From Ruditapes philippinarum (Eukaryota): 64,000 bases of DNA. The notes beneath the pieces were generated by a model, which saw only the letters and a program-made list of their open reading frames with translations, searched no databases and was not told the DNA's origin. Below, in pieces: positions 3,001 through 43,100 of this stretch (position 1 is the stretch's first letter; every line of letters starts with the position of its first letter). The stretch lies in NCBI RefSeq assembly GCF_026571515.1, contig NW_026866608.1:186001-250000 (forward strand), read 5' to 3'. The translations under genes and the position numbers were made by a program.

Positions 3001-6000
3001 GTATAAAAGTGCTGATTTGATAATTGTTTTTATCTATTGATAAATTGATTGCCTTTGACATATATTCGCTCACTTTTTTATGGAAGATTTGTTTCCTTTA
3101 ATCAGTCGTGTATACATTACTTCTGTTTCATTACTCCGCTTCAGTCCAACAGAATGATTCTTGGTCAAGCAAGACCAGCATTTAACGAAACCGATATTCA
3201 GTATGTATGTGTCTTTTGGTGTCGAGTAATTTATAGGGAAGCATTTGTTTGTAACTATTAGCAACAGTTTAACATGTGAAAAATGTGATTTATATTTTAC
3301 CAATACATATATTTCAACACATTTCAGAAACATATTCTTTTGGATAACATAAAGTTTGATTCCCTGCGGGAAGATTTGGTAAGTAGCACTTTCTGTGTAG
3401 AAAATAAAAGTGACATTATGTCCATTCAAGTTTAAGTTGTTCGCGCAAAGGGAAAAGTCAAAATATCTTTACATTTTGCCATAATTGTGATCAATTATAT
3501 ATAAAATTTAACTATGCAAAATTATTCAATATCCAAGTGATCCACGCATATTTTTTTATAAAAATCGTTCGGAATGTATAAGAAACGTTCCTATTTTGAA
3601 AAGGGTGGGCAGTCATTTTTTAATTTAGGAAGTGTTTATATCCTACCATTATAACAAGTGAAATTGTCAATCTCTGGAAATATATTACTAACTCAACTCA
3701 GTTTGACAGCAACAAAGAACCTAATGCCACCTTGATATCAACTAGCAAGTTAGTTGGCATTTTCTATTATTTCATTAATTTTGTAATCTAAATTTAGTTG
3801 TTTTTATGAGCGTTTACGTCAGTCGTTTCCTAAAGCGAGTAACTTTTAATAAGATAAATTTACATTCATTGAATGATTGCAAGCAAGTGACATCACCTGA
3901 TCAAAATGGAATTTCGAAATCGCTGCTTTGAATTTTCTGTTGTTTGACGTTAGAAAATAAAATAACCGCTATTGATTGTAAATACAATACTAGAATGTTA
4001 AACCATCTCTTTTTTCTGAATCTTTAAACATACTTAATGACGTATGTACCAAGTAAACATGGGCTAATTTAGCGCTATTATTTTCTAATAGATAGCGCAG
4101 GATTAATCATTTAAATAATTTTGAAGTAAACAGGATTTGAAGCAACATGAGGATGTCAATATGAAAAAAAAAGCAAAAGAAAACAATTAATTTGTTCCTA
4201 GAGAAACAGGATATAAATTATCATTTATTTATTCTTTATTTTGAGTAGGATTGACTAAAGGTGTATAACGGATGTTTATAAGACTAATATTGATGGCATT
4301 TCAATGATACAAAACAACGTGTTATTTCTCAGCCAGCATCCTCGCGATATGTTTATATCAAATATTGATTATTGTATCATAGTTTGGAGACCTTTCTGTT
4401 GAAAATGTTTCAGAGTTAAATCGTATACATATACATGCACAGTGCGTTAACTGGAGTGCAGGTATAAGTTAATCGCACTCCAGAGCATATCCATTGGTTG
4501 GCTAATTTTTGCTGGGGTTTACTTATTGTAACTACAGAGAAAGGGAAAGCGACAGAAATTTCATATTTAGATGCTCGATCATTGGTTACCTTTTTTCTAG
4601 TGTTTCATATTGTGACAACAGGGAACGTGTTTTTATGTTTGACTATGATACAAAAGAGAAAGAACATCAAAATGCTCGGCAATCTGATTTCACTTTGTTT
4701 CCAGAATTTAATACTGGGGAGGGGAAGTGTGGGGGGGGGGGGGGGCTACGCCCCCTCGTACAAATCAGATATCCTCGTGTTTCGATGCTATTTGTAAAAC
4801 TATCTCCTTAACACAAATAAACATATATTTTGTGTAAGAATTATTGCTGTGGGTTTTCTTTAAAAAAAAACAAAACAAAAATGTTTTTGTAACCAACATT
4901 AATTCGAGGTTGGTATATTGGTAACCAATATTAATTTGAGAGTAGTATGCTTGTAACCAATAATAATAATAATAATAATAATGATAATAATAATGAAAAT
5001 TATTATAATAATGATAATAATAGTAATACTTATAATAATAATAATAATTTGTGCGTTGTGATTTGTAACAAACATTGATTTGACTGTGGTAAAACATTTT
5101 GTCCTCAATGTTTACATGTCGTGCCAAAATTCAATTTTTCTCTTTCAACTGAAAATTAGTTCTTATCAGGTTTGTACAAGTTTATTACATTTTTGATCAC
5201 ACAACACCTGACAGATGCCTCCAAGTATCTTCTCTGTTGTAAAATAGTTGTTCTTTTATTATTAAACCTTTGTATGTTTATGCTTGTAACTTAGTCAAGT
5301 CGTTTGTAATAACCTTTCGTGTCTAGCATCAAACAGGGTACACAATTGAATCAATCTTATCTGTATGCAGATAAAATTATTTTTTATCATAGTTTGCATT
5401 TAACATGGCAAATGTAGTTTTATAATGTGTATGTATTGCCCAAAGGACAGACAAAGTCGCATGCAAATACAAATAATGGCAAAATCAGCGCACACGTTCA
5501 TGAAGAGAAAGATTAATGATTACGAGTGTCGTCTGTCGGTTACAAAATAAGCTATTCAGAGTTATTGTTGTCTGGAATAAAGACTTAATTGTATTTTTAT
5601 AATACTGTATCACACTGTCTGTACACTGAACACTTTGATTACAGATAAATTATTTGCACGCACATGTCTGTTTGTCTATCATTCATTTCACGATATAATT
5701 ATTAATTCCGTGATACATGATATCAATTGAAATGAACTGTGTGTTATGGTCATTTTGTGTTATACACACTTAAATATGTAACAGGACAATCAACAAATTT
5801 ATTTTAATCTGAATATCGTAATTTTAATAAAAAATAAATTCTTTTTTTTATAAGAATGCAAACATAACATGTTGTTAATATTCATTTAATATATTAATCC
5901 ATATTGTATTTCAATCTCCGTTTCAAATTATTATAATATTACATGATGCAAGATACAAATAAAATAGATGTTGGTCTTTGCCTTTTTCACGAGTTTTTCA

Positions 6001-7079: not shown

Positions 7080-9985
7080 ATATATTCTCAATTCCTAGAA
7101 TACTCACGTAAACTCATAATAAAAAAGAGAATAACAATCTATCATTCTGTCTTATTTGAACATTTTCACTTCTTAAATTCGTATAGATTGATGAAAAATA
7201 CATATTATTGTTATCGAAACAAGCACAAAGAAGCAACTTGTCGTATTGTTTTTCCTATTTATGTATCATTCTGTATGTAAGTGGTCCAGTTGTGATTGAT
7301 ATTCAGCAGAGACATTCTTAAACAATACGTCCTAATTATCTAAAAGGAAAGACCTAGATACCTTTCATTATGCAAAGGGTTAAGATAAATATATCATATT
7401 TTAATCAGAATTTCAAATAGGATCAGAATTACAATTTCAATTTCGAACGGGACTCTGTTTTGACTAGCAAAACAATATTGACACGCTACTTGGGAAAAAA
7501 GTGCAGATTTGAAGGATGTACGGAGCCACGTGTTACAGCTGCTATACAGAAGTTTACACCTGCTGCTTTGAATACAACAATTCTTGAAAGAACAGGTCCC
7601 TCGGAAGCAATAAAATCAATAAAAACACTAAAAAAAAAGATGCCTTAGATAAGGAAGAATCACATGAGTGTGCAGATCAAATTAATGTTATACAAGAACG
7701 TTATTGAATATTGTGATCAATATGTCTAGAAATGATAAAAATAACTGAGTTTAAACAAAATCGCATGCCATTACTGCGGGAGTAAATATATGTCAATCCT
7801 ATATTATTATAAAAACTAAACTATTTTGTTACAAATAACGCCTGTATTCCACATAAATCAACGTTATTTATTGTAGTATGTGCTTTTACAATTATCAAAT
7901 ATTTGACAGTCACTTATTTTGTACAGACCAGGGTCCCAGATGCTGCAATTTATAACCACGATTATGCCAATATCTTAAGACTTAAGAGTGCTATTATCTT
8001 CCATTAGACAATTTTCTTTATTCTTATAATTTAAAGAATTTAAAGAAGTTTCTTTCCGACAACAGAATTCCATTTGTCTCTTTGAGAAGCAGTTGAGTGT
8101 ATTTTAATATCTGGATAAAGATACTTAATTGATCTTGTCTTAGTTAGAGTATAATATTTTGGAATAGAATTAAAGATGGTATGGGATATGATATTGCAGC
8201 ACCTTTAATTTCGAAGATTGAATATCACTTCAGATGGACATATATCGTGTGAGATGTCGCTTCTTTTAACACTACGAGTCTGCAATAGTTGTGTATTTTT
8301 TGTTGTTGTTTTCATTGCTTGCTTCCAAAAGATGAGATAGATCACCCCTTTTTCCCCCAACAATATGAGACAGAATAGAGCAATGGACTTTTCTACTAAC
8401 TTTTCTACTATTATTATGTATTAATTATTAGAAGTGTCAATTCTTAAAGACAAGACAAGTTCGTACAGACATCACGTACTTTGTCAAACATTTAGTTGCA
8501 AGATCAGATGTTACCCGTGAAAGACCTTTGCAAACAGAGATGTTTCGTTTTTTTCACTTTGACCTATATATTCAAGATTAAACTAAAATGATAACATATT
8601 ATCTGTGACAGCACTGTAATATATCAAAACATAAGAGCAAAATGCAAGACGAAAATCATTATCTGATTTGACCATAGGACACACACGTGAAATATTCAAC
8701 GTTCAAACATACGTTTTATTTTGTTTTAAAATCCTTCTGATTCAAATTGGTATTTTTCATTCACTATGAAGATGAATTCGACTTGAACATTCCCTGTAAA
8801 TTGATAATCAATTATAACAGTCATATAACTTTAATTTCAACAACTGACTTTTGTTTATTTTGATAGAAATAAATAGCCATTTGTCATAACATCACATTCA
8901 AAAATATAATTATGCATCTAAAATATTTTATTTAAAATTATTTATTAAATTTAATGAAATGATTTTAATATGATGTTTATATCTTAGTTTAGATTTGTGC
9001 CTAAGCCGGTTTTCATTCACAGTAGAAATAATCAATACATATTACTTTATCTGTACTGTTGGCTCTCAGATATTGTTGAAGCATTGTCTAGAGAATATTT
9101 CGGGCTTACGTAATTATCGATCAGTTATCATCAGAAGCATAGCCATGTTACAAGAAAATGGTATTGTTCTTTTGGATTTGAATCTTTCCCTCCAGTATTT
9201 TTTTTTGTTTTCTTAAAACTAGTCTATGCATTTATTTAGATATTGTGATGTTGTGGCTCAATTATACTCATTATTATAGCGTTAAGAAATTTCTGTTTTG
9301 TCTCGAATAGATATTTTAAAAAACAACACGAACAAACAAAAACATTTTACTTCAATGCCACTTTCAAAAACGGGAAAAGCACAAACTGCCATGTAAGCAT
9401 GACGGTGAATCAAAGATATGTATAACTGTAAAAATAATTCAGCAAGCCCTTGGTGGTAAATTTATATACGTACTTTTGGAAACATCTAGTTTTGGAATTG
9501 TTTCCGATCGTGAAAAATAAGCAAAACAGCAAAATCTATTTAATTTGTAAATTGTATTATGTAAATATGATATGAAACGCATATTGAAATACAATATTGA
9601 TAAATATATTTTATTAACAACATGTTATACATTATGTAAAATCTATCTCATTTTTTATATTATAATATCAGTTTTCTAAGTAAGTTAATACAGTTATTTA
9701 TATATGCAGCCTTATTGCTTATGGTTCTTTTTATGTTCATTGAAGTGATATTTATATCAAATCAATTTCGTTAACCGTCCTGTTAAATTGATAACTCTGT
9801 ATGACACAAAATGATCATAAAACATAATTTATTTCAATTGTCATCATGACTACTCGGAATTGATAATTATATTCAGATGCAATAAATTGGAATCAATGAT
9901 AGACAAGGAGACGGTTGCGTGCACATATTTTATCTTTAATCAACGTGTTCAGTGTATGGACAGTTTGATACAGTATTATAAATAT

Positions 9986-10003
9986 CATCGTCGGATACCC
10001 ACG
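9986..10003 (+). repeat. Left TIR of the AcademH element
   Basis: CATCGTCGGATACCCACG, exact reverse complement of 22671-22688; preceded by TSD TATAAATAT. Confidence 0.95.
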
Positions 10004-10084
10004 GCCGAACCATTATCATTCATCAGCCGTGGGAATTTTTGCCGATATTCAGTCGATTAGAGGTGTGTCAAAGGCAGCTATTTC

Positions 10085-10165
10085 ATTGGCTGCCTCACGA
10101 TTTCATGAGGCGACTAAAACCAATCAAAACGCGCGTTCTGTACGACGTTCGGTGTTACAGACAAT
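10085..10165 (+). promoter_or_regulatory. Putative helicase promoter (opposed CCAAT boxes, CpG-rich)
   Basis: ATTGG (10085-10089) and CCAAT (10120-10124) flank the palindrome GCCTCA..TGAGGC. A CGCGCG and the start context aatATGGCG follow. CpG-rich compared with the flanks. Confidence 0.4.
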
Positions 10166-12573
10166 ATGGCGACGACCATAGACGACACGTTAAAATCAGT
10201 TTGTGAAAAGTTCAACATCGAAAAATTAAACGATTTCCAGCAAGAAAGTAAAGATAATTTACTTTTACAGCGTGATGTTTTCCTTTCTGTTAGAACTGGT
10301 GGTGGCAAAAGCCTTGTTTACGAGGCTTTCCAGTATATTTGTGAATGTCGAGAAAAAGAGCATTGCCAAGTGCTGATTGTAACGCCTCTTATTTCCATTA
10401 TGAAAGAACAATGTGACTTTCTAAATTCATTAGGATTTTGTGCAACATACATTGGCCGGGACAAGAAAGAAGATGATGAAATTTTAGAAGGAATACATGA
10501 CTTTTTGTTTACTTCACCAGAAAGTCTTCTCGGTGTTGCAAAGTGGAGGGACATGCTGTTACAAAATTCCAGGATTCGCTTAATAGTTGTAGATGAGGCC
10601 CACATAGTTCTCCACTGGTATTTACCTTTTTAATCATTTGTTTTGATTTTGTAAATTATTGAATACAAACAAAGAATAAATAGAATCCAAACCCACGGCA
10701 GTGTCCTTCTAGTAACTGTAGTGAAATACTTTTACATGTATAGTTTTATCCTGGTTACTGGTTGGGGACCACCAAAACCGGACAACCACCAAACCAGGAC
10801 GGCCCCGAAAATGCTTAATTTAATATTTTCTTTGTTCACTGGTTGTCAGTCACTTTTTATCAACAATAAGTGCATGTTTCTTTTAAAATTAAGTAAATAA
10901 ATTTATTTCAACCTCCGTAAATGGTAAAATTTTAATGTCTATTTCAAGAATGTTGACTTTGAAATTCGGGGGTCATGAAAGCAATGCCTGACCTCATATA
11001 CCAGCTATAATCATTTGCAGAGTGAATAATAGAATATCCAAAACTTCAGCATTTGTTGCTGACATATTGAATAGCATGTTACAAATCAAAAATCAAAACA
11101 CCCAAGCTTTTATCTGAATTAAATCACATCATGTACATATCTGTCCGGACACATGGTACTGTAGTGTAGACAATGTAGGTAATTTTGATACCCTCCTTGT
11201 CGAGCATATGATATAAGTGTCAATACATTCAGAAATAAATTGTGTCAAATTTTTTTATCTCTAGATTAAAAATTATGAAATTTGTACGGAAAAATGTTCC
11301 AAAAGTGCCCAGTTGATGGTCTCCGACCAGTACATAGTTTGGAGGAAAATGGTCTATATTTTTAACTTTTGAACTATCAACACTGTTTTGATTGACTGAC
11401 TCTCATTTGCAGTAGAGTATTTCCGCCTTCAAAACATTTAGTTACATTTCAATGATTCAACAAGATGTAGGTCAATACTGTAAACACTAAACAATTTTGG
11501 ATGGACAGCACGAAATAACCATTTATACCCAAATACACCCAAATATAATAAATATAAGAAGAAATGCAAGTCAGAATGGAAATAGAATTTCTCAAATTTT
11601 AACAAATAAAGCTAATATGCATAGTCATTGTAAAGTTTCATTTCAAAAATATTTAATTTCATCATTTTCCAGGGGAGAAGTTGATGGTGATCAGCAGTCT
11701 ACACCTTTTAGAGAATGGTTTGGAAAACTTGGGGAAGTGCGATCATTAGTACAGTGTCCATTGTTGCTTATCACAGCAACAGCAAGTAAAGCCTCACGTT
11801 TGAAGATGCAAAAGATTTTCTGCATGAAAAATTGTTTTGAAAAAATTGAAAGCCCAGACAGAACCAATATTAAATTATTTTTGCACAAATTCAAATCTAG
11901 CCAAGATCTTACAAAGATATTTGCATTTATGATCAATGAATTACTAGAAAAAAAAGAAAAATGTGACAGATACCTTGTATTTTGTACTTCTATTAAATCA
12001 TGTAGTGATATTTATACCATGTTACATTTAGAATTGGAAAGTGACATTCAGTTTGTACAGATGTATCACTCAATGACAGTTGAAAATGTTAAGGAAGACA
12101 TTAAGCAAGATCTGGGTAATAAAGATGGCAAAATTAGAGTTTTAGTTGCAACTAGTGCTGCTGGGATGGGTGTGAACTTCAAGGACATTGGCCAGGTGAT
12201 AATCTTTGGAGTGCCCAAAAATATGGACAGTTTTGTGCAACAGTTTGGAAGAGGTGGTAGAGACCGTAGTCATGCAATGGCAATTTTATTGTTCAATGGA
12301 CAGCAGTGTAGAGGTATAGACAATGACATGAGTGAATATATTATCAACAAAGAAACCTGTCGTCGCAAAGTGATTTTAAAAGCATATAACACTACAGTTA
12401 ATGACAGTATATTAGCACATTTATGTTGTGATATTTGTGATAAGAAGTGTACATGTGATCGAGAAGATTGTTCATCTTATACTCATCCTTTTTTTGAGAT
12501 GTGTGACTTACCAGAGTCAGAATCGTCTAATTCTGACTCCGATTGTGAAAGTGATGACATTATGTCTAACTAG
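10166..12573 (+). CDS. RecQ-family SF2 DNA helicase, transposon-encoded, 2 exons, 450 aa, apparently intact
   Basis: Exon 1 is 10166-10617 and exon 2 is 11673-12573. The GT..AG intron 10618-11672 splits codon TG|G and gives VVDEAHIVLHWGEVDGDQQSTPFREWFGKLGEVRS. Motifs seen: I RTGGGKS, Ia PLISIMKEQ, FTSPE, II DEAH, III TATA, IV LVFC, YHS, V VATSAAGMGVN, VI QQFGRGGRD, and an RQC-like zinc region CRR...CCDIC. Confidence 0.92.
10758..11330. mobile_element. TA-flanked MITE (Tc1/mariner-pogo-like) in the helicase intron
   Basis: Ends CTGGTTGGGGACCACCAA and rc CTGGTCGGAGACCATCAA match at 15/18. TA at 10756-10757 and 11331-11332. No ORF. Confidence 0.7.
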
Positions 12574-14057
12574 TGAATAATCAAATGTACACTGGTCTTT
12601 TTTAATTTGTATAAAACTAAATGTACCTGTTTGTTTACCGGTAAATAAATTATAAATTTGAGGTTGTTAATTATTTCGGGTTGTATTTATATATTTGATT
12701 ACAATTAGTTTAACAGAAATTGGCTGCAAGAACTTCAATCAAGATTTGTAAATTTTAGTAATAAAAGTTCATGAGGACTAGTTTATTATGACCAATAATT
12801 AGATAATCATTAAGCTGGCTGATGGAACAGTCCAATTCAAACGCAGCAAATGTGTTATGTGCAGCTGTAGTTATATCAATACAGCTATGACACACACTTT
12901 GAGTGGTGTAAGTTAGCCCTACTTTCACTGCAGGTGATTTTTAAGGAGGAATGTTTTCTTTTTACTACATATCATTTCTTAAATATGTCCATGCTGGACC
13001 ATTTGGTATTTTAAAATTTGATAACACACATTTATGAAATACACAATGTAGTATCAAGCTACAGTTATATGAAACTCTTACTTAAATTTTAAGAAATACG
13101 TTTCTATTATACATGTATAAGTGGACAGTTAATATAAGAAATAACATGTTGTAAAAAGAAAAGCGATTCAACCTGCGATGTTGTCGATAGTGATTGGGAA
13201 AAGCAGATGTTAAGCACATGTTTCACTTTTTGCTGAAAACGCCACCGTTCTAAACTATGTTACAATAGCCCAGTGGCAATAAAAAAGCAAATTTAGCAAA
13301 GTGAAAACACATAAGACTAGTTCTTTTTATAAGTTTATTAGGAAAATCAGTTCCCTTTAATTCATTAAAAGATGCATATATTCAAAATGAAATTGATTAT
13401 ACTATAGATGCTACTCTCCTGACAGCCATGTTCAGACATTATATGCTTAAGATAGAAATATCATATTTTCAAACTGCAAAACAAACTTTTACATATTGGT
13501 GCTACAGTATAATGATATATCCCTTCATATGTGTAAAAGAATTTTATAATTCACAGAAAGTAGCATTGTTGGATACCCACAACTAATCAACATGTTACAT
13601 GGCCTGGTTCATGCATGAGACACTACATCTCAAGGTTATAATTTCATATATCGACCTAAATTACATGTATCACAACTCAATCATTTCATTATTTACATTA
13701 TTTTACATGGTGCCCTGTGTCACGCAAATTAAAAAAAACTTGCAACAACAGCTTTTGCCTCAACATAAGGTTTAATATTTAATATTAAGAATCTGCAGAT
13801 TTTAATTGAAAATACTAGTTTAAACACAAAAGACATCATAGAATGAAAATTATTACCTTATTTTTGTGTTTGTATGGTGAATTCAGCAAGGTTATAAGTC
13901 ATAGTACCTACTATATCTTAGTAGGGTATAAATTATCAATAATTCTGCAAATATGTACTACATGTAGTAACAAATTATACTATATAATATGGTTTTAGAA
14001 CAGCCCCAAACCAAAAACAATTATTTGACAAATCAAATTTACTATAAGAAAATAAAC

Positions 14058-14098
14058 ATATGAGCCGTGTCATGACAAAACCAACATAATGGGTTTGC
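14058..14098 (-). repeat. Orphan copy of the right terminal arm of the 14418-14654 MITE
   Basis: ATATGAGCCGTGTCATGACAAAACCAACATAATGGGTTTGC is the exact reverse complement of 14617-14657. Confidence 0.8.
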
Positions 14099-14417
14099 AA
14101 TTATATTCTAACTTGATAGATAATTACATTCTTAACTTTCAAGGTATTGCAAAAGTAATCTATCTTAAGACAATATTTTAATAATCAAAAGGACATTTTA
14201 TATCATTAAGGTATTCTAACTCGAGATTGAATAGGTTTGCAAAATAAATATTCAGGAAAAAGTGTCGTTTCTAGTGCAACAATTGCCTATGTTAACATGT
14301 AGGCAATGAAATGCATATTTAAGACTTTTCTTGAATAAATGAACATGTATACAACAAATGTCTAATTTTTTTTGGGGGGATAAGGTTGGTAGTGAATTTC
14401 TTTATCACAATATAATA

Positions 14418-14654
14418 TGAGCCGTGTCACGACAAAACCAACATAGTGCGTTTGCGACCAGCATGGATCCAGACCAACCTGCGCATCCGCGCAGTCTGAT
14501 CAGGATCCTTGCTGTTCGCTTACCAACTCTATTACAAGTAGAGAAACTGATAGCGAACAGCATGGATCCTGATCAGACTGCGCGGATGTGCAGGCTGTTC
14601 TGGATCCATGCTGGTCGCAAACCCATTATGTTGGTTTTGTCATGACACGGCTCA
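14418..14654. mobile_element. Palindromic (fold-back) MITE with TA flanks
   Basis: About 100-bp inverted arms TGAGCCGTGTCAYGACAAAACCAACAT...GCTGTTCGCT around a short loop, with TA on both sides. Resembles a high-copy bivalve MITE. ORF 14424-14645 is a by-product. Confidence 0.85.
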
Positions 14655-15419
14655 TATGTTTTCCATTTCCTGAAAACTTTTCAAAATCCAAGTCAGAATA
14701 GTCTTGCATTCAGCCCTTGAAATTCAGTTTTAATGAAAGAAAACATTTGTGGTAAAATATCGCAATAAATGATGACTAAATGGTTCCACACATTTTCATA
14801 TTTTTATATTTTCTTTGACCTCTATATTTGACTTTGTCTGCAGGGACATGAACATTTTCCTGTCAAACATGCATTTAAAAATTAAAACATACATGTATTG
14901 TTTCTGGTGATCATAAATAATAGTAAATTTAACCTTCTAGATTAAAACATGTTCAAGCTTCTAACCTGCACAATATATTAATTACCTTTAAATAATAATT
15001 ACATTTAGTGATTCCTTGAAAAATGAAAAATGTATCTATTACTAAGGTCATGTCAATTAATAAACCTAATGTAACAAATATGACCTAGATTGAAAGTAAA
15101 ACAATACAATTTTATGTTAATACAAGTGCTATAATTTTGATTTCACAAAAACTTTAAATTTGTGGTATCTTGTTTAAGTTTCCACCAGTGGTTGGCAATT
15201 GGTGTATTCATAATGAATTTATAAGTAATTTTTATGGAAGTCAAAATACTATTTGTTAACATTTTCGACACAATAATGTACATTCAGCACTACTTTTTTC
15301 AGCTGTTTAACATCTTGCATACTCTAAATATATTGTTTTTAAACATTATTAATCATATGTTTGACATTTGTAAAGAAATTAATACATATGCATTTCTGCA
15401 TAATGTTCCTGGCACAGAA

Positions 15420-18400
15420 TTACATTAACAAATTTGCTATTTTCTTTTGAGTATTTATCCAATCATGCAAGTCTCCAGCATGTATACAGTCTAAAGGGTT
15501 TCTGAATGTAGAAAAGTTATTCCAACGCAAGTCCTTAACACTTCCTCTTTGTCTCAGGTAGTCAACCATTGCCTTTATGTCCCCATTTTTGTTAACTGGT
15601 GGTCGTTCTCTCTTTGATCTTGCTGTTCGGGTTGTTCTGATTAAGTTTTGTTTAATGTCACTCACTACTTGTGTGGTCATACAGACTTGTTTAGCAGATT
15701 CATAGGATTTGTTTGCTCCTTGGCGATTTAGTTCCTGCTTTATATTGTGAACTTGTATCTCCACGGCATTGTCATTTGGGATGTTGTTACATACCCCACC
15801 ATGCAAATTTACACAAATATTCCATTTGTATTCAAAACTTTATTTTGCCCCAAGAAGAGACATTGAATATGACACCATCCGCCACAACCATATTTTATAT
15901 TTCGAGTGTTTAATCGATGAGTCATACAACCATTCAAAGTGTGCATTTCGAATTGATCTGTCTCCATCACACATTTTATACGAGTCACAAGTGTCCCTGA
16001 ATAACAAGGACATAAACAAGAAATGCTTCACAGCATTACTAACTGGAGCATCCTCATTAACTTTGTGGAAATTCCAATGATGTTTTTTGACAAGATGCTG
16101 TTTAAACCAATTCAATGATGTATATGTTTTACCACAAAGACAACATGTGTATTGATCACCAATTTTCATAGCTTCAAGTTGGCAGTCATCTGAATGAAGA
16201 GCTGTTAAGTCTGTCGTTAGCTTGGAAATACTATCCTTTTCACTTAGTTCAAGACTTTCTACAATACGTTTTGACAACAAATTCACATACTCTATTTTTT
16301 GGCTTTTGTTCATTAAATGTATAGGAGGATGTGGGACAGGTGATGCCATATCCTCCATGTCCAGTATATCTAACCCAGCAGCGACAATGTATGCATCTGT
16401 AACATCTTGTAGAAAATCTTGATGGGGTCTGAAAAACATTAAGGTTTATCTTATAAATAAAGAAGATTTCAATTACTACGAAATTTTAAAAACCAAATTT
16501 TTCAGGCGAACCATTTTTTTTAAATCTCAGCAAGAAACAACCTCCAGGAGCAAGTTTTACAGTCTGATTAAAGCTTACCATATTTCAGAATAAAATATTG
16601 TTATGGTATTTTGTTTGTAATCTGTATAAAATACATAAAAGTGTATTGGTCAAATTATCTCATATAAAGTGTTATTATTATCTTAATAACCATGCTTGAA
16701 AAACAAGACAGCAATAATGCCCTATATTGCTCACCAGGGTACCATTGAAACATTTAATCTATCCAGACATCTATATATTCTAAAAGCTCAAATTAGCACT
16801 ACATGCATAGGTGATGTATATTTAGATAATTGATTATCAACATTGTTTACCTGAACTTCTGCACAACATCTTGCGCACCAGTCACATCTCTGCGGTTAAT
16901 CAGATTACGGAGCTGATATAATGATCCAGGGTCCCGAGCACTACCACTGGTGTAGAAGAGCTGGTAGATTCCCTGCAACACATGTAGTTATTGTTTTTTA
17001 TCATTAATAGGTTCTTTTCATGCTACAGTTATTTGGAATCTTTCACAAATTCAAATTTAAGCTTAAAAATACATGTGCAATATTATACACTTATCATATG
17101 AGATATATATTAACCAACGAGAGCTCAATACTGGCTATGCGTGACCTTGCCCTTAGAGATCCAGATGACATGTGCATATGGAATATTTTAAATTAATAGT
17201 CTTACTATGTTATTAAGTATTATTATTACCAATAAATTATAGATTATCTAATGTTATTTCATGCTTTCCAGTGTTTTATTGTAATATATCAGATGATTAT
17301 ATTCTTTTAAACCACTAGTGAAATTTATAATATATAATTTTCACTGTAGCCGAACTATATCTGAATGCGGATACAAGAATATCAAAACTAAATGGAATAA
17401 CAGGCAAAAATAAATTCCGCCATGCGTAAATTTTGCTTCTTTTGGAAAAGAAAGTCGATGTCACCATACATTAGGTTAAAATGTATCAAAATTAGAGAAA
17501 TTTAACAGAACTATATTTCAAATTTGTTGATGTGACGTCATGATGTGATGACGTCAGTGACATTACACGGCAAAATCAGTAAAAATTACTTAAAATCACT
17601 TAAAACGCATGAAATAAAAAGAAAATTTATTTGTTTTACATATAAGATTGAAATATATTTCATTCGTGAACACCAGCTATTATATTTTCACTAGTGGCTA
17701 CGCCACTAGTGAAAATATTGCATCTGGTGTTCACTCATTGAAATTATATTTCAATCTTACATGCAAAACAAACACATATCCTCTATTTCTTAATCATGTA
17801 GGTACCAATCTTAGTCTAATACCAACAAATTGTGTGTGAAAAATAAGTGAAAGATATGTGAAAAATGTGAAAGTAAACAAGTGTGGAACATCATGACAAA
17901 ACCTGCAATAATGACAAGTTAACTTATTTCACAATAATCTGCAAAAACATGTATGTTTTCAAATACTTCGGAAAGTATAAGCCTTGTATCTTAAAGGCCC
18001 ATTATACATGAACCTAAGAAATGTTTTTAATTTCATTTCTCAAAGCTTTTTAATTTTTTGTTTACTTTTATATAAAATTCATGTTAACCCTTTTTAAAGA
18101 AGTAAAAAACAATATTTCAGAGTCATAATTATGAAAAAATACAATTATTTTAATGCAGGTTTTGTTTCAATGTAAACAAGAAATAAAACTTAATGCAACC
18201 AAGATAACTGAAACCAAACTTACATGAACTAATAATAACAAACAGTCCAAATTTTAACTCCTTATTACTAATAGGAAGTTGAATTCTCTGTGAAGTCCAT
18301 CTGGTCTGTGTACAATTCCAAACAAACAGTGAAACTCTGTATCACCATTCTGCATTGCCTGCTGTGCCGAGAAAGCCCTTTCATTAGTAAGGACATCTCC

Positions 18401-21400
18401 TCCAAATACAAGTTTTTGCACTACTCTGCCATCTGAATGAGGAACAGCCAATTCATGCACCTTTTGCAAAATATTGATCATACCTTGGGATGAATTTTCA
18501 CTTGAGTCAATTAGGTCACAGTTGAATATCACTGATTTCTTTTTTGTTATTTCTGTATAAGGGTGGTCTATATATGCTGGATAAACATCCTTCACTGGTT
18601 GCAGAAATTCAAAGTACTTGAGAAGTACCTTTGAAATATGGAAAATAAAGTTCTGTTCCAGTGCTTCCATATGGTCAACTGAAGGGACCCAAGTATGGGG
18701 AGGTATTTCCAGAATGGGCTGCTGCTGTGGAACAGGTGTTGGCAAGTTTAGATGTTCATATGTCACTCTAATTTGCTTTACCATAGTTAAGAACCAGTGG
18801 AGACTTTTCCGCTGTTTTTCCATAGTCATATGTGATGGTGAAATGGTAATGTCAAAGTTATCTCCTAATATTTCAATGGTTTTTGGTTGACTGTCACACT
18901 CTAGAATTTCATTTTGGTGATTCTCACAATTTTCTCTCAGTGTTGACACTTGTTCTGGAATTGAACATGTATTTGTAGCTTGTTTGACTGCACATTTATC
19001 TTGGAATCCCTGGACAACACTGTTAATATTTTGTTCTTGTTTTTTCACAAGGTCCTTTTTCTTTTTAATTACGCTGGTGTAGGAAACTGCTAACCCAAGA
19101 TCATGAACTATATTTAGACCCTGAAAGAAAAAATATATATATTTTAGCATCATTTTGATTTAACTAATACATGATAGAACACAAGGCTGAAACTAGATCA
19201 GGTTCTTTTCCATGGATTTTAGGAACATGGAAATACAATGTAGGTATTTCAGCAATGTTATGTTAAAAATTGGGAATTGGATGTAAAGAATCACTGTCTA
19301 GGATGGCATCTTCAAACATTTAAGCACCATAAAAGTGAAGAAGCCCTTATTTTCAAAGATTTTAGAATTTGTTATTAATATTATTATTTTGTAACTTTCA
19401 AAATTTGGAAATAAAATTCCTGTGGTTTGAAAATAACATACTATTTTCAATTGGGAATATGAACTAGTATCAGCTATAAAATAACAAAAAACATCCCTGC
19501 AGATTTACTTTCTAGGGTTCATAGATTTAAACTTCAGATTACTTATAATATTATTATTATTTGGGTCTGATAATTAAATATATTAAAGATCCTGTATGTT
19601 TTGTGATTGATATTGATACTGTGTGTATACCAGGCTTGCAAAAACTATATTTGTATTTAATTATGCAAATTAAACAATTTTCAAACATCGAATAAATTCT
19701 AAAATATTTACTGCAAATGTTTGTGCACATTCTATTCAATCAATAAATTACATGCATTCATTTCTTATTGGAAAATTTTACTAAGCATTTATATAAAATA
19801 AATTTCTAATTACCTCCTTTTATTTACATGAAATGTTAATTTGGGTAATATCTTTAGAAATAATGCTTATTGGAACTTACAATATTTACAAATCTTAATT
19901 TGAGCATCATATTTTATATTTATGAAATAAAACCATGAAAAAATTGTGTTACAGGATCTTTAATTTATCTCCAGCCTTATCATTATTATTTATATAACTA
20001 AAATAATGTTGCAACAACCTAATAATCTAAATAAATTTAATTGAAATCTAGTAAAATTAAGTGAATATGTAAATTGAATTACCTCTTTATTTAGCCCACA
20101 GCCATCAAGTACTAAGCCAAGTACATACTGCATGAGGTTAAGAAATTGATTTCGAGTGTATAACAGAACAGAAACTGCCACCACAAAGCGGGCCATGCTT
20201 TTCTGCTTTGTAATAAAACTTGCCAAAACAGATGAGAGAGTCGGCATTTTTAATTTGATGATGTCAAATTGGTCTTTCCAAGAAAAGTTCATGAGTTTAT
20301 TTGTTGTAGACACTTTAAAATCAGTTTCTGGCTTTTTAGTGAGTGCTGAGGTCTCTTTAATAATCTCTGTTGATACACATTTTAAAAGTGCAGATTTATA
20401 TAGTTCTGATTTTAATAGATGTTTATCTACAGCAGCTGGCCCTTTCCTGTTGACAATAGCTTTAATGGCTGATTTCTCTACTTTGTCTGTAATTATTTTG
20501 GACCTTTCCTTCTCATTGTACACCAAAGTTACCTGTTAGAATTCATTTAAAAATTTATGAATATTTATAACAATTCTGATATTTATAACAATATTTAAGT
20601 TTCAGGTTAAACACTATTTGAATTTTATTCAGTAAAATAATAAAGAAAAAGTTTCAATGCCATGTAATATTTTATGACAAATTCAATACTAAACTAGCTC
20701 TACCACTCATGAAAATCAGAAATCAAATGAACACATATAACTGTTATTTGTATTAAGGCCTTGAGTCTGTCTAAGATATTACTTGTGATTGATTAAATGA
20801 CATCAATATATTAAAATTGATCAAATGCAAACCTGGAATTAAAAATCTGAAATTTGAATAAACTCGTGGCTTTTAATTAAAGTTTTTATGGAAATATTTT
20901 ACCAGAATATACATTTCTTAAAACTGATTTTATCCAATTTAATTGGCATTGTTACTTGAAATAGATTTTAACTTTAACAATGATAAATTTATTGCACTGA
21001 CTGTACCTTCACATCAAATGGCTTTCTTGTACATGTAGTCACAGTTTCTGTGCTTGCATCCACCATTTTTGGTCCACAGTGAGTAATGCTAGGTCTCTTT
21101 GGGGTTGTGATCTTCTGTGGTGTTCGAAACAAAGACTTCTTACTTTTTGGTGTAACACCACTTGGTGAAGAAATTGTACGCTTTGTTGAACCTGGTTTTG
21201 ATGCTACAAAATATAGAATTAACCATAATATATATGCAAAACATTGCCCAGTGAATTTATGTTTAAATACTAGATAAATTTGCATGAGATACAACATCCT
21301 GCCAATGGAGGATTTGGTTTAACATTGTATTCAGCAGCTATGGTCATATTTCAATTTCCACCTTTCATATGGAGGAAGACCACCCAGTATTATTCCAGTC

Positions 21401-22510
21401 ACAAGCAGATGTTCATGTTGTACCTGGGTAGAACCACTAACCTTCCATTAGCTACCTGGACAACTACTTGTCTGAGTTAGAAAACTAAAAACAAGTTCTT
21501 ATATATTCATTTCTATAATAAGTACTTGGAACAGTTACAAAGAAACAATGATTACTTATCCCGAACCAGTGATTTTGCAAGCTAATGAATTATCAGACAT
21601 ATAAAAATATTTTCTTTCTAAAGAATCAGGGTCAGCTTGGCACTAAAACATACTCGATCCTATCCCAACTTGGTACAGGGCCGAGTTAACCCTTTACTTT
21701 TTCTAAGTATTAAAAAAAAACAATATACAACGATTTCCCAACAGCTTGTCTATGTTTACAGTTGAGTGACGATTCACCCCTTATTATTTAAAACATTTTT
21801 TTATTTGTTTGGATTGAAAAACATGTATGGTTTGGGAGGGGGGGGGGGGGTAGTTAAAGGTCTTCAGTGTACCCATTTATATAGTATGACATGATGTTAA
21901 CTTAAATGCCACATCAAATGAAAAACAAAAATATTAAAAAGTGGTTTATAAAGTTTGGGAAGCCAGAACTGGAGGGGTGGGGTGGGGTGTTGATGTTCGC
22001 ATCTTTTTGTTATTTGTAACATTATTTTCGTCACTAAACAGCTAAATGAGGGGCTAATCGGGAGACTATTTTTTTCAATATTGATGAATACATTTAAGTG
22101 TCCATTTTGTGTTCCTACAGAAAAATATGGAAACTTTTGAACTTTTTATATCGTTTCTATAAGTTTTAAGAAAGATAGTCAGATGTCGCAAACACATACA
22201 TACCAGTTGGAGTAACATGTCGCGTTGATTGTGCTTTAACAACACCTGGCAATTGCTCAAACTTTTGCAAAAGTTCTCTTTTCTCGGTCGCTAATTTACG
22301 ACCGATTGTCGTTTCATCCTCAGTGCATTTTCGGATTCTATTAAGAATATTTACACACAAGTTACAACAAAATCCAGTAGGTGAAACGTTAATACTTGCA
22401 AAAATATCGTTATATTGATATCTGCTTGCAGATGAACTGACTTGGCGATAGTTTTTGCCGTTAATTTTACCAAGACACGTACAACAGCTTTTAACTGTGG
22501 GCGCTGCCAT
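15420..22510 (-). CDS. Academ-type DDE transposase (DUF6589-like), 6 exons, 978 codons, with one in-frame TAA at 15840-15842 (possibly a recent pseudogene)
   Basis: Exons 22510-22204, 21203-21007, 20532-20083, 19120-18269, 16972-16851 and 16428-15420. All introns are GT..AG with matching phases (1,0,0,0,2). Motifs: GDNFD, GGDVLTNER, DGLHREFN, GSLYQLRNLINRRDV (exon 5, missed by the ORF track), DGDR, KWNICVNLHGGVCNNIPNDNAVE. There is an N-terminal CxxC..CxxC and an internal C2H2 finger. Family assignment is from motif recall, not a database search. Confidence 0.85.
17284..17788. mobile_element. Non-autonomous element with a long terminal hairpin (class uncertain, Crypton-N-like) in transposase intron 4
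   Basis: About 140-bp imperfect palindrome at 17631-17771 with a perfect 17-bp core stem, ATATTTTCACTAGTGGC-tac-GCCACTAGTGAAAATAT. CCACTAGTGAAA recurs at ~17312. Boundaries are approximate. Confidence 0.55.
21312..21470 (-). mobile_element. Degenerate SINE-like fragment in transposase intron 1
   Basis: Minus strand reads GGAAGGTTAGTGGTTCTACCCAGGT...GGTCTTCCTCCA...ATATGACC...TGTTAAACCAAA, which resembles the body and 3' end of a common bivalve SINE (recall only). Confidence 0.4.
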
Positions 22511-22620
22511 TTTGTTTCTTACTGTTTTTTTACCTCCGCAGTTGAAGAATACAGATTTTGTTAAACGCGATGTCATTGGTAGATATTTTACGCACCTGTT
22601 GCTGTATATCGACGCAAATC
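22511..22620 (-). promoter_or_regulatory. Putative transposase promoter
   Basis: Minus-strand CCAAT (22575-22579) followed by CGCG, about 65 bp upstream of aaaATGGCAGCG at 22510. Mirrors the left end. Confidence 0.35.
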
Positions 22621-22670
22621 GATTCATTTTACCCACGGTTGATTGCATGTTATGTGACATGTTTATCAAT

Positions 22671-22688
22671 CGTGGGTATCCGACGATG
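22671..22688 (-). repeat. Right TIR of the AcademH element
   Basis: CGTGGGTATCCGACGATG followed by TSD TATAAATAT at 22689-22697. Confidence 0.95.
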
Positions 22689-25600
22689 TATAAATATACA
22701 ATTAAGCCAACAACAACTCAGAATAGCTTATTTTGTAACATACTGTACAGACGACACTCTTATTCATTATTCTTTCTCTTTATGACCGAGTGCGCTGATT
22801 TTTGTGCCTTTATGTGAATTTACATGCAACTTTGTTAGTCCTTTGGGCAATACATACATTTTAAAAAAAACTATATTTGCCATGTTAAATGCAAAATATG
22901 ATAGAACACACAAGTTGATATCTGCATACACACATATGATTTATTCAATATTGTACACTGTTTGATGCTACACATGAAAGGTTATTGCAAATGACTTGAC
23001 TAAGTTACAAACATAAACTGACCAATGTTAAATAATAAAATACCAATTATTAAACAACAGAGAAGATACTTGGAGACATCTGTCAGATGTTGTGTTAACA
23101 AAAATGTAATAAAATGTACAAAGCTGACAAGAACTTAAGTAGAAAATCTTTTACAACTTTCAAATCAATGTTTGTTACAAATCACTACTCACAAATTATT
23201 GTTGGGCAGAAGCAAACTACTCTTATTGGTTACAAATAAACCAACCTCGAATTAATGTTTGTTACAAAAAAGTAGTTTTTTTAATGAAAACCCCATAGCA
23301 ATAATTCTTGCACACAAATATGTGTTTATTTAGTTTTTGTGTTGAAACTTTATCATCAATATTTGATATAAACATATCACGATAATAAGACAGAGAACAA
23401 CACGTTGTTTTTTATCACTAAACGCTAACAACATTAGTCTTATAAACATCCGTAATCCATCTTTAGTCAATCCTTTTTAAAATAAGGCAAAAATAGGAAC
23501 AGACTAATTGTTTTCTTTAGTTTGTATTTCATATTGACATTCCCAGGTTGCTTCAAATCATGTTTACTTCAATATTATTTAAGATGATTATGTTTTCAGA
23601 CACATCAATCAGTCAAGTCTTGTGTGATCTATTCGAATATAATAGCGCTAAATTATCCCATGTTTACTTAGTACATATGTCAATCTGTCTGTTTAAGATT
23701 CGACAAAAAGGAAGGGTTTATATTTATGTTTGTAAAATTATAAGGAAACATGTGGTAATGTATTTACAATCAATAGCGGTTTTTTATATGCTAACGTCAG
23801 ATGACAGACAAATCAAAGCAGTATTTCGAAATTCCATTTTGGTCACGTGATGTGACTTGATTGCAATCATTCAATGAATGTAAACTTATATAAGGAAAGT
23901 AACATTTAGTATATCTAATAATATTTATTCGCTTTAGGAAACGACTGGCCTGCATCCTAATTGAAACGACTAAATCTGCATGGCAAAATGCATGAACAAG
24001 TAGAAAATGCTAACTTAATTACTAAAGTGACATTATGCTCATTCATTTTTACACTCAGTCTGTCAATCTGAGTTGAGTTAGTAATGTATTTCAACAGATT
24101 GTCTGTTATAATTGTAATTGACCAATAATTGATTTTGAAAAAAATGTTTAGGGTTATATAATTATAAAAACTACATAAATTATAAAAATTGCCCCACCTT
24201 TTTTCTAAAAAATGAACGTTACCAATACATACCGAACGATATTTATAGAAAAATCCATTGATCACGTGGATTATTAAATACATTTGCATTATTATTATAT
24301 ATGATTGAACACTATTATGGCAAAATATAAAGTTATGTTATATTTTCCCTTTGCTTTAACCATTTACAATTAAATGGCCATAATGCCGATTTATTTTTGT
24401 CACAGTAAGTGATAATAACTTCACGTTTAACGTTGGAAATCAAACTTTTTGTTATCGAAAAGACAATCTTTTGAAATTGCTGAAATAATATTTAATGATA
24501 AGATAGAAAAAATCCTTTTCATATGTCAAACTTTGCTAAAAGTTACAAACAAATGCTACGCCATCAAACCTTTGTCACCAAAAGACACGTTTATACATTA
24601 AAATCGGTTTCACTATCATTATGTTGGACCGGAGAGGATTAATGAAATAGAAGTAAAGTATTTATTATACGACTGGTTAAAAGAAAAAAAATCTTCCATA
24701 ACAAGAGTGAAATAATATATATCAAAGGCAGTCAATGTATCAATGGATCAAAATAATTACTAAATCAGCACTTAATATTTAGCCGGAGACAATACGTTCA
24801 TTATTTTAGATTACAAGTAACGTTGTTTTCGCAATCACTAAGCATCCATCACTAGACATTGTGCAAACGGAGAGACAAAACAATGCTAGAGGAAATTGTA
24901 CACCTATAACAGTCAATTGTAATTAGTTTCTTTATACAGAGGTAGATCTGAGCTGCGTTGATTTGCATAAATTGTGAACCTTGTTAATAACTTGGACCAA
25001 TAGTAGACAGACATGAAAGAGAACTTCTGCGTAACATCAATAAGTATCTAATGATTTCGTCTTTTCTTTGTCAATTTATCATTCCAGTATGACCGAAGCT
25101 TTATTGTTGTGTTAAATATGTGTTTAATTGATTTACTTTTCCTTTCTATGTAGAAAGGATATATTAGGAATTGATATAATCTTTGTTAACTTAGCATAAA
25201 GATACAATGTATTATTAAATATATCATTGATTTCCTTAAATACCCACGTAGTACAAGCGTCTCAATATATTGTTCCCAGTTTGTTCCCTTTCTCGCTTTT
25301 GAAAGGTCTTGGGTACGGGTATATTTGTTTAAAGCTACAAGTTCTTTCAGTATAGGAAATAACCAGAAGTCGTTTACATTAATATTCTAAATACAGAATT
25401 ACAAATTCGCTTACATTTTATAATCATATGACAAAAGAAACACCATGCCTGTTTAACACATGGATAACACATGTAACAGTTCATCCTCATTTTGATGTTG
25501 ATATAGTGCTCATGTTCTTGCCAGTCAGTGGAACAATGATGACTGAACATGTCTGTACACCCATTCACGTATGACTTTATTCCTTACAAAAAAAAAATTA

Positions 25601-40118: not shown

Positions 40119-43100
40119 TTAATTTATAATTATATTAACAACATGTTCCACATTATGAAAATTTGTCGCATTTTTTAAATAATTTTTCAGTTTATTAAGT
40201 AAGTAAATACAGGTATTTGTGTTTGCCGTCTTATCATTCTTTTTTATGTTCATAAAAGTTTTGATCATCAAATTAAATTAATTTGTTGATTGTCCTGTTA
40301 AATTGATAAGTCTGTATGACACAAAATGACCATTACACAAAGTTGTTTCGATTGCTATCATGACTAAACGGAATTGATAATTATATTAGATGTATAAAAG
40401 TGGAATAAATGATAGACAAACAGACAGGTGCGTGCAAATAATTTATCTGTAATCAAAATGTTCAGTGTACAGACAGTGTGATACAGTATTATATAAATAT
40501 ACAATTAAGCCTTTATTCCAGACAACAATAACTCTGAATAGCTTATTTTGTAACAGACAGACGAGAGTCTTAATGATAATTCTTTCTCTTAATGACCGAG
40601 TGCGCTGATTTTCGCCTTGCTTTGTATTTGCATGCAATTGTGTCTGTCCTTTGGACAATACATAAAAATTGATAAAACTATATTTGCAATGGTAAATGCA
40701 AAATATCATAAAAACACACAAGTTGTTATCTGCATACAAAGATATGATATATTCAATTTTGTACCCTGTTTGATCCTAGACATGAAAGTTTATAGCAAAT
40801 GACTTGTCTAATTTAGAAGCATAAACAGACCAAGGTTTAATATTTTAAACAAGAGAGGAGCTACCTGGAGATATATGGCAGCTATTATCTTAATAAAATG
40901 AAATACAATTGTACCAAGCGGACAAGAACTAATTTTCAGCTGGAAGAGAAAAATAGAATTTTGACGCGACTTGTTATCATTAAGAAGAAAATGTTTTACC
41001 ACTATCAAATCAATGTTTGTTACAAATCACTACTCGTTATAAGCATACTTCTCTCAAATGATAAAGTTTCCAATATACCAACCTAGATTTAATGTTGATA
41101 ACAAAAAGGTTATTTTTTAAGAAAGCCAATAGCAATATTTAAAAAAAAAATATTTATTTATTTATTGTATTGAGAATTTATCCTCAATATTTTATATAAA
41201 AATATCACAATGATGTTGGCTGAGTAAGAACACGTTGTTTTGATTCATTGAAATGCCAACAACATCAGTCTTATAAACATCCGTTACACACCTTAAGTAA
41301 ATCCTTCTAAAAATAATGATTGAAAGAATTATGATTATTTATATCCTCTTTCTCAGGAAACAGACTAATTATTTTCAATAGCTTTTATTTCATATTGACA
41401 TTCCCATGTTGCTTCAAATCCTATTTACTTCAAAATTATTTAGATGATTATTTTTGCAGACAAATCGATCAGTCAAGTCCTGCACTATCTATTAGAATGT
41501 AATAGCGCTAAATTATCCGATGTTTACTTAGTGAATATGACAATAATTTTGGTATGTTTAAAGATTCGAAAAAAAGGAATGGTTTTTATTTATATTTGAA
41601 AAATTCTTAGGAAACACATGGTAAAGTATTTGCAATTAATAGCGGTTATTTTATATTCAAACGTCAAATGAATCATTTTGAAATTCCATTTTGGTCGATT
41701 GCAATTATTCAATGAATGTAAATATATACAATTAAAAGAACATTTACTCACTTTAAGACACGACACTAAAAGACACATACATAATGAATATCTGTACCAT
41801 TAAATGTTGATCTTGCTTGACAAAGAATCACTCTGATGGACTGAAGCAAACTAATGAAACAGAAGTAGTGTATACACGACTGGCTAAAGGAAACAAATCT
41901 TCCATAGAAAAGTGAACGATTATATGTCAAAGGCCATCAGTGTAGCAAATGATAAACTTATTATCAAATCAGCTCTTCTAATCTTTGCCGGAGACAATAA
42001 ATATATTATTTCAGATTGCAAGTAACGGTGTTTCACAATAGTGTAAAGCATCCGTTACCAGACATCGACAAAAATCGTAGAGAGAAATCGTAGAACTATA
42101 GCTGTCAATTGTTTCTGATATATCTGTACCTTAAAACTGCTTATTTCGGTTAAAAGTTTTTTTTGCTCAACAATTCAACCAGCTACTTTTAAAGAAGATT
42201 ATTTTATCATTATAATATAATTCTGTCATTTGTCTTTTAGAGCTCTTTATTATAACTTAAATCTGACAAAGACAAGTTTCTTATGCAATACAATTTCTCT
42301 TTTAGTTCGGGAAAAGAATCAAAACTTCAAAATGGACAGAAGCTTTTCTCAGTTTCGCATTAATTGAGTAACGGCGGAAACGACTTCCTTTTAACATAAA
42401 TTGTGGTTCTTGCATGAATGGTTTCTATAATAAGCCGGAATGCGATTATTGGCGCAGTCTTTGTAGATGCAACTCGACTTTGTTTTTAAGACAAATTACA
42501 ATTCATTGCAATAACTCGTCTGGAGCGTTCACTTGATGAATGTACAAAGCTCAGTCCCTTCTTTCAATATTAAAAAAAAACATGTAAAATTACCCGTTCA
42601 TCTATGTGATGTTTCTGAAAATATATTACAAAAATGGCACAGATATAAATCTATTATTGATGTGTTAGTAGAAAGACCCATTTGTCTATGAAATAAATGC
42701 TGTTTTAGCACATTTTCTTGTAACCCCACGGTTTACGTTCTTTTAATGCGATTTTAAAATGAGACTCATCCGCGTAAAATATTGCAGTTAAACATCGATT
42801 GTAGAAGCATAGTTCTATGTTTGTCACACGAAGAGACATTATTTACGCTTTCTCTATACATTATGATTGTCTCTATAATACCAAAATGGCGTGCATATGC
42901 GATTGTGCGAATAAAATACATATTCTTATTTTTATATCTGTTCGTGTTATATATAAGTCACATCACTGCGTTTTATATTATAGAAATAACACCAAGATAT
43001 AAATATATCAGCATTGATAAAGTATTCTGTTCTTTTTTTTACTTAAGACGTAATTTATTACGTGTTGAAGTCTTTGACAAGACATTTCCGACATTATAGA

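Follow-up and report, generated by a model that had tools for sequence, protein, structure and literature searches.

A precisely bounded helicase-carrying transposon, probably of AcademH type, in the clam Ruditapes philippinarum

Within the Academ superfamily of transposons, one animal sublineage carries an XPG nuclease. The AcademH lineage of the same superfamily was reportedly described by Kojima in 2020 (Mobile DNA 11:15). PMC10045372 gives target site duplications (TSDs) of 9-10 bp for AcademH and of 3-4 bp for AcademX and ties this difference to the presence of a helicase or of a nuclease, and AcademH is cited also through PMC10799480. Academ is reported as a bivalve-specific expansion with 100 curated consensus sequences, in work that includes the Ruditapes philippinarum assembly GCA_026571515.1 (Martelossi et al. 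2023, PMC10294476). Helicases also accompany some Kolobok transposons, which have TTAA 4-bp TSDs and 5'-RR..YY-3' termini: in the fungal KolobokH the helicase gene lies downstream of that for the transposase, and Kolobok-1_CCri encodes its RecQ helicase on the complementary strand (PMC9587614). Here, we analysed a stretch of 64,000 nucleotides from R. philippinarum (the window; contig C15095:186001-250000 of the 1.41-Gb, 15,874-contig assembly GCA_026571515.1), in which a 12.7-kb element at 9986-22688 contains a RecQ-like helicase gene and a predicted DDE transposase gene in convergent (tail-to-tail) orientation. We consider it quite probable that a cut-and-paste transposon with two genes, belonging to the AcademH type, inserted once to give 9986-22688, a classification in which catalogued Academ elements were compared by description only.

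The window has a G+C content of 26-36%, and its three open reading frames (ORFs) of at least 180 aa all lie inside the transposon. An original prediction, made from the sequence letters and a list of ORFs, had proposed 18-bp perfect terminal inverted repeats (TIRs) and a 9-bp TSD, and both were borne out at the coordinates given in Table 1. The two TIRs match at all 18 positions and the element begins and ends with CA..TG. When the 18-mer was searched at up to three mismatches, three occurrences were found in the window, as against 0.00 expected from shuffled sequences, the third being an inner relic that is considered below. Alignment of the two ends revealed further subterminal blocks that are common to both and arranged in the same order, namely CCGTGGG (10027-10033) and CGATAT (10043-10048).

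The insertion target is itself a local repeat of about 750 bp or more. Its copies in the window lie at 5214-5817 (minus strand), at 9600-9985 plus 22689-23080 (the two flanks of the element), and at 40129-40874 (plus strand), and further copies are present near C15095:389,905-390,993 and on contigs C13549 and C6914, with identities of 69-83%. This repeat family thus supplies paralogous empty sites. The copy at 40129-40874 runs from the left flank through a single TATAAATAT into the right flank with no interruption, the minus-strand copy holds a single TATAAAAAT, and two more empty sites outside the window (on C13549 and on C15095 near 390,285) show the same 9-base overlap between left-flank and right-flank matches. 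Because the uninterrupted paralogous sites hold the 9-mer only once, TATAAATAT is a true target duplication, and the 12.7 kb is therefore a single insertion that duplicated 9 bp of its target.

Table 1. Features of the transposon, its target sites and other sequences within it (positions in the window; exons of the minus-strand gene are given from 5' to 3')
Feature	Position	Strand	Evidence or remark
Left TSD, 9 bp, TATAAATAT	9977-9985		9-mer single at paralogous empty sites
Left TIR, 18 bp, CATCGTCGGATACCCACG	9986-10003	+	Perfect; also bounds 44 non-autonomous copies
Left subterminal region, 5' of helicase ATG	10004-10165	+	Kept in miniature derivatives
Helicase exon 1, DEAD/DEAH domain (motifs 0, I, Ia, II)	10166-10617	+	Pfam DEAD, 3.8e-17; equals XP_060575606.1 residues 1-150
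Helicase intron, GT..AG, 1055 nt	10618-11672	+	Homology, splice sites, RefSeq match
Helicase exon 2, Helicase_C, partial RecQ zinc-binding part, acidic tail, stop	11673-12573	+	Pfam Helicase_C, 1.9e-18, and RecQ_Zn_bind, 5e-4 (under the curated cut-off)
Transposase exon 1, ATG at 22510 (AAAATGG context), CxxC...CxxC zinc-finger-like N-terminus	22510-22204	-	Homology; RefSeq model of C14907 derivative
Transposase exon 2	21203-21007	-	Boundaries backed by RefSeq model of C14907 derivative
Transposase exon 3	20532-20083	-	Homology; 5' boundary approximate
Transposase exon 4, start of DUF6589	19120-18269	-	Pfam DUF6589, 2.1e-9
First catalytic aspartate codon (GDNFD), predicted	18860-18862	-	Corresponds to P0086 D352; exon 4
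Second catalytic aspartate codon (FGGDVL), predicted	18395-18397	-	Corresponds to P0086 D505; exon 4
Transposase exon 5, 122 nt	16972-16851	-	tblastn of three full-length homologues; splice sites
Transposase exon 6, C2H2 zinc finger (from 16145), in-frame TAA	16428-15420	-	Homology
Catalytic glutamate codon (NDNAVE), predicted	15759-15761	-	Corresponds to P0086 E813; exon 6, downstream of TAA
Right subterminal region, 5' of transposase ATG	22511-22670	-	Alignment of the two ends
Right TIR, 18 bp	22671-22688	-	Exact reverse complement of left TIR (18/18)
Right TSD, 9 bp, TATAAATAT	22689-22697		Single at empty sites
Empty site 1, single TATAAATAT	40492-40500	+	In uninterrupted flank copy 40129-40874
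Empty site 2, single TATAAAAAT	5593-5601	-	Within flank copy 5214-5817
Decayed copy of right-end terminus, 37 nt	13564-13600	+	30/37 identical; points inward like the left end
Old unrelated interspersed repeat, between the two genes	13700-14053		93 candidates, 72-81% identity
Nested palindromic miniature element of about 245 bp, between the two genes	14415-14661		4176 candidates, 93-97% identity

The plus-strand gene agrees with the two-exon RecQ helicase that had been predicted. Homologues align to it at 10190-10618 and 11686-12513, and joining the donor TG/GTATTT (cut at the slash, after 10617) to the acceptor TTTTCCAG (immediately before 11673) restores the sequence ...DEAHIVLHW-GEVDG... 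across the junction. The 450-aa product is 100% identical to RefSeq XP_060575606.1, and the full-length query used for searches was P0231, a database protein whose sequence does not differ from that of the two-exon model. The domains anticipated for the two proteins were also detected by Pfam, with DEAD (6e-19) and Helicase_C (4e-20) in the helicase and DUF6589 in the transposase. For RecQ_Zn_bind, only the second half of the domain matches the helicase (7e-4, under the curated cut-off), and neither RQC nor HRDC was found in this Pfam scan, in which a canonical fungal RecQ shows both RecQ_Zn_bind and RQC.

The clam helicase has motifs 0-VI, the DEAH box and the zinc-binding cysteines in common with canonical RecQ proteins (E. 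coli RecQ, RECQ1, WRN, BLM, and RECQ5), but it is only 450 aa long, lacks the RQC winged helix and HRDC, is about 30% identical to them, falls in a separate clade and is encoded within a mobile element. Its best matches among solved structures are all members of the RecQ family, with E. coli RecQ first (5.8e-17) and WRN, RECQ1, BLM, and RECQ5 close behind; since no RecQ paralogue stands out among them, the helicase is not an orthologue of any one animal paralogue. The database search separated its relatives into two tiers. The first comprises about 55 proteins, mostly of 430-620 aa, that score between 617 and 150 bits and occur in bivalves, gastropods, the annelid Platynereis, corals, and amphioxus, and the second consists of canonical RecQ proteins, with scores of 126 bits or less. 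When 30 sequences were placed in a maximum-likelihood tree, 17 element-type helicases from bivalves, annelid, corals, and amphioxus split from canonical RecQ with support of 96/99, with several paralogues per oyster species and the annelid sequence nested among those of bivalves. This separation from canonical RecQ was seen in a tree that did not include the clam's own RecQ paralogues.

Considering that RefSeq names this protein 'ATP-dependent DNA helicase RecQ-like' and that it retains all helicase motifs in an intact frame, the gene might be taken for one of the host's own RecQ-family genes, either situated by chance between two miniature elements or captured on a single occasion. We regard this as extremely unlikely. 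The gene is located within a single insertion that has one TSD and whose paralogous sites are empty, and a second copy lies inside another TIR-bounded derivative elsewhere in the genome. Moreover, the protein lacks RQC and HRDC, resembles none of the animal RecQ paralogues more closely than it does E. coli RecQ, and belongs to a multi-copy, multi-phylum clade that stands apart from canonical RecQ.

The transposase gene on the minus strand was delimited by homology-guided splice-site searches in which adjacent exon pairs were joined, the exons being otherwise searched singly. Homologues of the transposase are numerous (824 in a representative library), and those of full length, with Argopecten and Pinctada among the sources, have 928-1108 aa and a complete DUF6589 at E-values of 1e-26 to 1e-44, some of them with a weak N-terminal zf-AD match. 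They align in six pieces to the minus strand, and the six exons have a total length of 2937 nt (979 codons when the final stop is counted), each in an open frame and in the right phase. Exons 2 and 3 are those with the least certain boundaries; the RefSeq model of a deletion derivative on contig C14907 has the same first two exons. Of the six-exon, tail-to-tail transposase gene in the original prediction, the number of exons and the convergent orientation stood, but the exons differ from the six long ORFs. One of them, exon 5, is not seen as a long ORF because it is too short.

An in-frame TAA at 15840-15842 splits exon 6 into two ORFs of the same frame (15840-16439 and 15420-15806) and removes the last 139 codons, the predicted catalytic glutamate among them. 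The 11 codons that follow this TAA read SFEYKWN... and are colinear with KFEYKWN and EEYKWN in homologues, which shows a premature stop within one exon and not an intron; a mini-intron around 15840-15842 was ruled out on the same ground, namely that these codons keep the frame and line up with residues that are conserved in the homologues. Since the 139 codons behind the stop are still open and conserved, it probably arose recently. As the TAA cuts off the catalytic glutamate, the 12.7-kb copy is probably unable to transpose by means of its own protein. The transposon that had been called complete is thus complete in structure but broken in the frame of its transposase.

To place the transposase among known folds, an AlphaFold model was built from a 92-row alignment for the 928-residue homologue P0086, and not for the clam transposase, with a mean predicted local distance difference test (pLDDT) score of 81, above 95 in the core, and a predicted template modelling (pTM) score of 0.80. 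Foldseek against the PDB gave no significant match with this model. With VIA-align, the best match was the P element transposase in a strand-transfer complex (6p5a_A; Z 10.1, root-mean-square deviation 6.4, 358 residues), followed by Hermes (8edg_A; Z 9.2, 282 residues) and then by about 30 cores of retroviral integrases and of Tn5, mariner, Mu, IS, and RAG1 at Z 5-9. All of these core matches span about residues 345-853 of P0086. Z values of 8-10 are only moderately over background in this comparison, and it is the uniformity of the list that carries the argument. D352, D505, and E813 of P0086 are invariant in every alignment row that covers them, and a large helical insertion with a C2H2 finger lies between the second aspartate and the glutamate. 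The modelled structure thus identifies the protein as a DDE enzyme with an RNase H-like fold. In the P element and in hAT elements (Hermes), the RNase H-like core likewise has a large insertion before the catalytic glutamate, as in the P0086 model, but identity over the aligned residues is only 8-12% and there is no match at the level of Pfam sequence domains. To our knowledge, neither P element nor hAT families have a helicase partner.

These structural neighbours bring up the question of whether the element is a helicase-carrying DDE transposon outside the Academ of Repbase, in which a DUF6589 lineage nearer to hAT, P, MuDR, or Kolobok recruited a RecQ-like helicase of its own. The P element and Hermes transposases are indeed the closest structural neighbours, Kolobok lineages with RecQ helicases exist, and the assignment to Academ rests on indirect links. 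We nevertheless consider such an origin improbable. No hAT dimerisation, P element, or MULE domain was matched by Pfam in the exons or in the full-length homologues. AcademH is the only described animal lineage that combines TSDs of about 9 bp with a separate helicase gene, and Academ is the DDE class reported to have expanded in bivalves, matching the mollusc-rich DUF6589 clusters (in the ESM Atlas, homologues of the transposase are DUF6589 proteins mostly from Mollusca). With regard to Kolobok, KolobokH and Kolobok-1_CCri resemble the clam element as DDE transposons with a RecQ-type helicase, and in Kolobok-1_CCri the helicase is on the opposite strand as in the clam. However, the clam family has TSDs of 8-9 bp with varied sequence and no TTAA, and its termini are CA..TG instead of RR..YY. 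The TSD length and the termini thus exclude Kolobok. It may also be conceived, with still lower probability, that DUF6589 transposases and their RecQ-like partners form a distinct lineage allied to hAT, P, and Kolobok, in which there was one extra recruitment of a helicase and the inner terminus at 13564 is the trace of the joining. The fold, a [D/E]xxH motif and a zinc finger ahead of the catalytic glutamate are common to DUF6589 transposases and the hAT/P/Kolobok group.

Copies of the element were searched for in the whole 1.4-Gb assembly. The left end (terminal 180 bp) has at least 795 candidate matches and the right end (239 bp) at least 709, and among 60 loci that were fetched, 44 distinct non-autonomous copies with both TIRs were identified, mostly of 530-570 bp. 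These miniature elements are internal deletions in which 9986-10289 is joined to about 22410-22688, and 40 copies of standard length have a mean pairwise identity of 96.3% in a sample biased to the best matches. Of their TSDs, 26 are perfect 9-bp repeats, 10 are perfect 8-bp repeats, four are 9-bp repeats with one mismatch, and the remaining four are unclear; none of the 44 has a 10-bp TSD. Other copies with different 9-bp TSDs, for which the original prediction had proposed a search, were thus present in numbers, and some copies have 8-bp TSDs instead. The element in the window is apparently the source family of this abundant miniature element.

Longer copies are few. When the DNA of helicase exon 2 or that of transposase exon 4 was searched, the only matches besides the window were a single close copy and a single distant relative, and the copy in the window is the sole full-length one in the assembly. 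Three deletion derivatives were found. That on C6068 extends from the left end as far as 13369, its helicase being damaged by a stop and by deletions, and then continues with the last 51 bp of the right end; that on C14907 consists of 38 bp of the left end plus 17183-18886, 19862-21383, and 22032-22688; and that on C2612 corresponds to 21194-22689. A protein entry of NCBI for R. philippinarum is 94% identical to helicase exon 2. The C6068 derivative indicates that the helicase gene travels within the transposon ends in a second, independent insertion. In addition, diverged homologues of both proteins lie at most 10 kb apart at six other loci (C12321, C11008, C13947, C8116, C11761, and C3698), with both convergent and divergent gene orientations and, on C11008, with open frames of 1042 and 381 aa. 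Judged by their sequences, these linked loci presumably represent other families of the same kind.

The original reading of the locus as a helicase-carrying AcademH transposon is therefore supported by the TIRs, the 9-bp TSD, the predicted DDE fold, the RecQ-like helicase, the absence of an XPG match, and the pairing of the two genes at six further loci. The element resembles AcademH in its TIRs, DDE transposase, separate RecQ-related helicase, TSDs of about 9 bp, and animal host, whereas it differs from AcademX, since no XPG nuclease domain was matched by Pfam in any exon of the transposon or in the homologues and the TSDs are 8-9 bp instead of 3-4 bp. Several points weigh against this reading. 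DUF6589 is connected with Academ indirectly, through the length of the TSDs, the presence of a helicase partner, and the abundance of these proteins in molluscs and rust fungi; the TSDs of this family are 9 or 8 bp but never 10, compared with the published 9-10 bp of AcademH; for transposase exons 1-3, the splice sites were placed by homology and by a single RefSeq model of a derivative; and the premature TAA could be an assembly error or a polymorphism. The mean length of the Academ consensus sequences of Martelossi et al. is 5.6 kb, compared with 12.7 kb here, and a helicase is not mentioned in their text (PMC10294476). The clam TIR was not found in the examined part of their library. Taken together, a genuine and precisely bounded element of the AcademH type, a kind that is already known but little studied, fits the observations best. 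Considering that the transposase is truncated in the only full-length copy, that the kind was described in 2020 and that the bivalve expansion was described in 2023, the element adds an example and not a new principle.

The inner relic of a right-type end (13564-13600) starts exactly at terminal base 1, and its three mismatches within the first 18 bases (two C to T changes and one G to A change) all coincide with CpG sites in the TIR. Given that this 37-mer is identical to the right end at 30 positions and oriented to pair with it, the element could have been assembled from a transposase-only element at 13564-22688 with two right-type ends, which later gained the helicase and a new left end. 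Such a composite origin appears very unlikely, as the outer TIRs are perfect and the relic has decayed. The relic has no flanking TSD, and it is to the outer pair of ends that the TSD and the empty sites correspond. The inner end is used by no other genomic copy (no other copy of 13370-13699 was found in the assembly), the C6068 derivative and the miniature elements use the outer left end, and the six diverged families also pair both genes. The relic may be the remnant of a nested insertion, which is its likeliest reading.

With regard to the mechanism of an AcademH-type element, both genes are read towards the interior from starts that lie about 180 bp from the respective end, and their promoters would lie within the terminal regions. 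The transposase may bind the 18-bp TIRs and the subterminal blocks, with its N-terminal zinc finger contacting the ends. The element would be excised and then integrated through cuts staggered by 9 bp (sometimes 8), and repair of such staggered cuts would generate the TSDs. The family has given rise to hundreds of deletion derivatives of about 560 bp, which were moved in trans. Tentatively, the helicase might serve as an accessory motor, and it is possible that it unwinds DNA at the transpososome (at the ends, at the target, or during disassembly of the complex) or acts in gap repair, these being its most plausible tasks. The TSDs of 9-10 bp in helicase lineages, compared with 3-4 bp in nuclease lineages, hint that the helicase may act at the step of target joining or repair. 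In this family the ends are known exactly, the 9-bp duplication is proven by empty sites, the helicase gene is intact, and miniature copies with little divergence number in the hundreds; such material suits excision and integration tests of the contribution of the helicase.

It had been predicted that annotation would mistake the helicase for a host RecQ gene, and this mislabelling is real in RefSeq, where XP_060575606.1 and a protein of a deletion derivative (XP_060596155.1, at C6068:43531-47963) carry the same RecQ-like name. The derivative at C14907:116008-119952 is annotated as 'uncharacterized protein LOC132732420' (XP_060574819.1). In oysters, mussels, corals, an annelid, and amphioxus, relatives go by the names RecQ-like, RecS, wrn-1-like, BLM or blm-1, Q1, hus2/rqh1-like, and MED34-like, and members of the element-type clade from Platynereis, the corals Stylophora and Oculina, and amphioxus (P0243, P0253, and P0268-P0270) are annotated as RecQ, MED34-like, RecS, and Q1. 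The sequences suggest that the same mislabelling may extend across phyla. As transposon helicases are annotated as cellular ones, counts of DNA-repair helicases in these genomes are inflated.

Other sequences within the element include the old repeat and the palindromic miniature element listed in Table 1. The latter has a 106-nt inverted repeat with 93% complementarity, and an extra arm of it is present as a perfect 45-nt copy at 14054-14098, 320 bp upstream. In the 1.3-kb fourth intron of the transposase gene, nested imperfect inverted repeats with arms of 46 and 41 nt are located at 17620-17782, and these belong to the transposon, because the C14907 derivative has them too.

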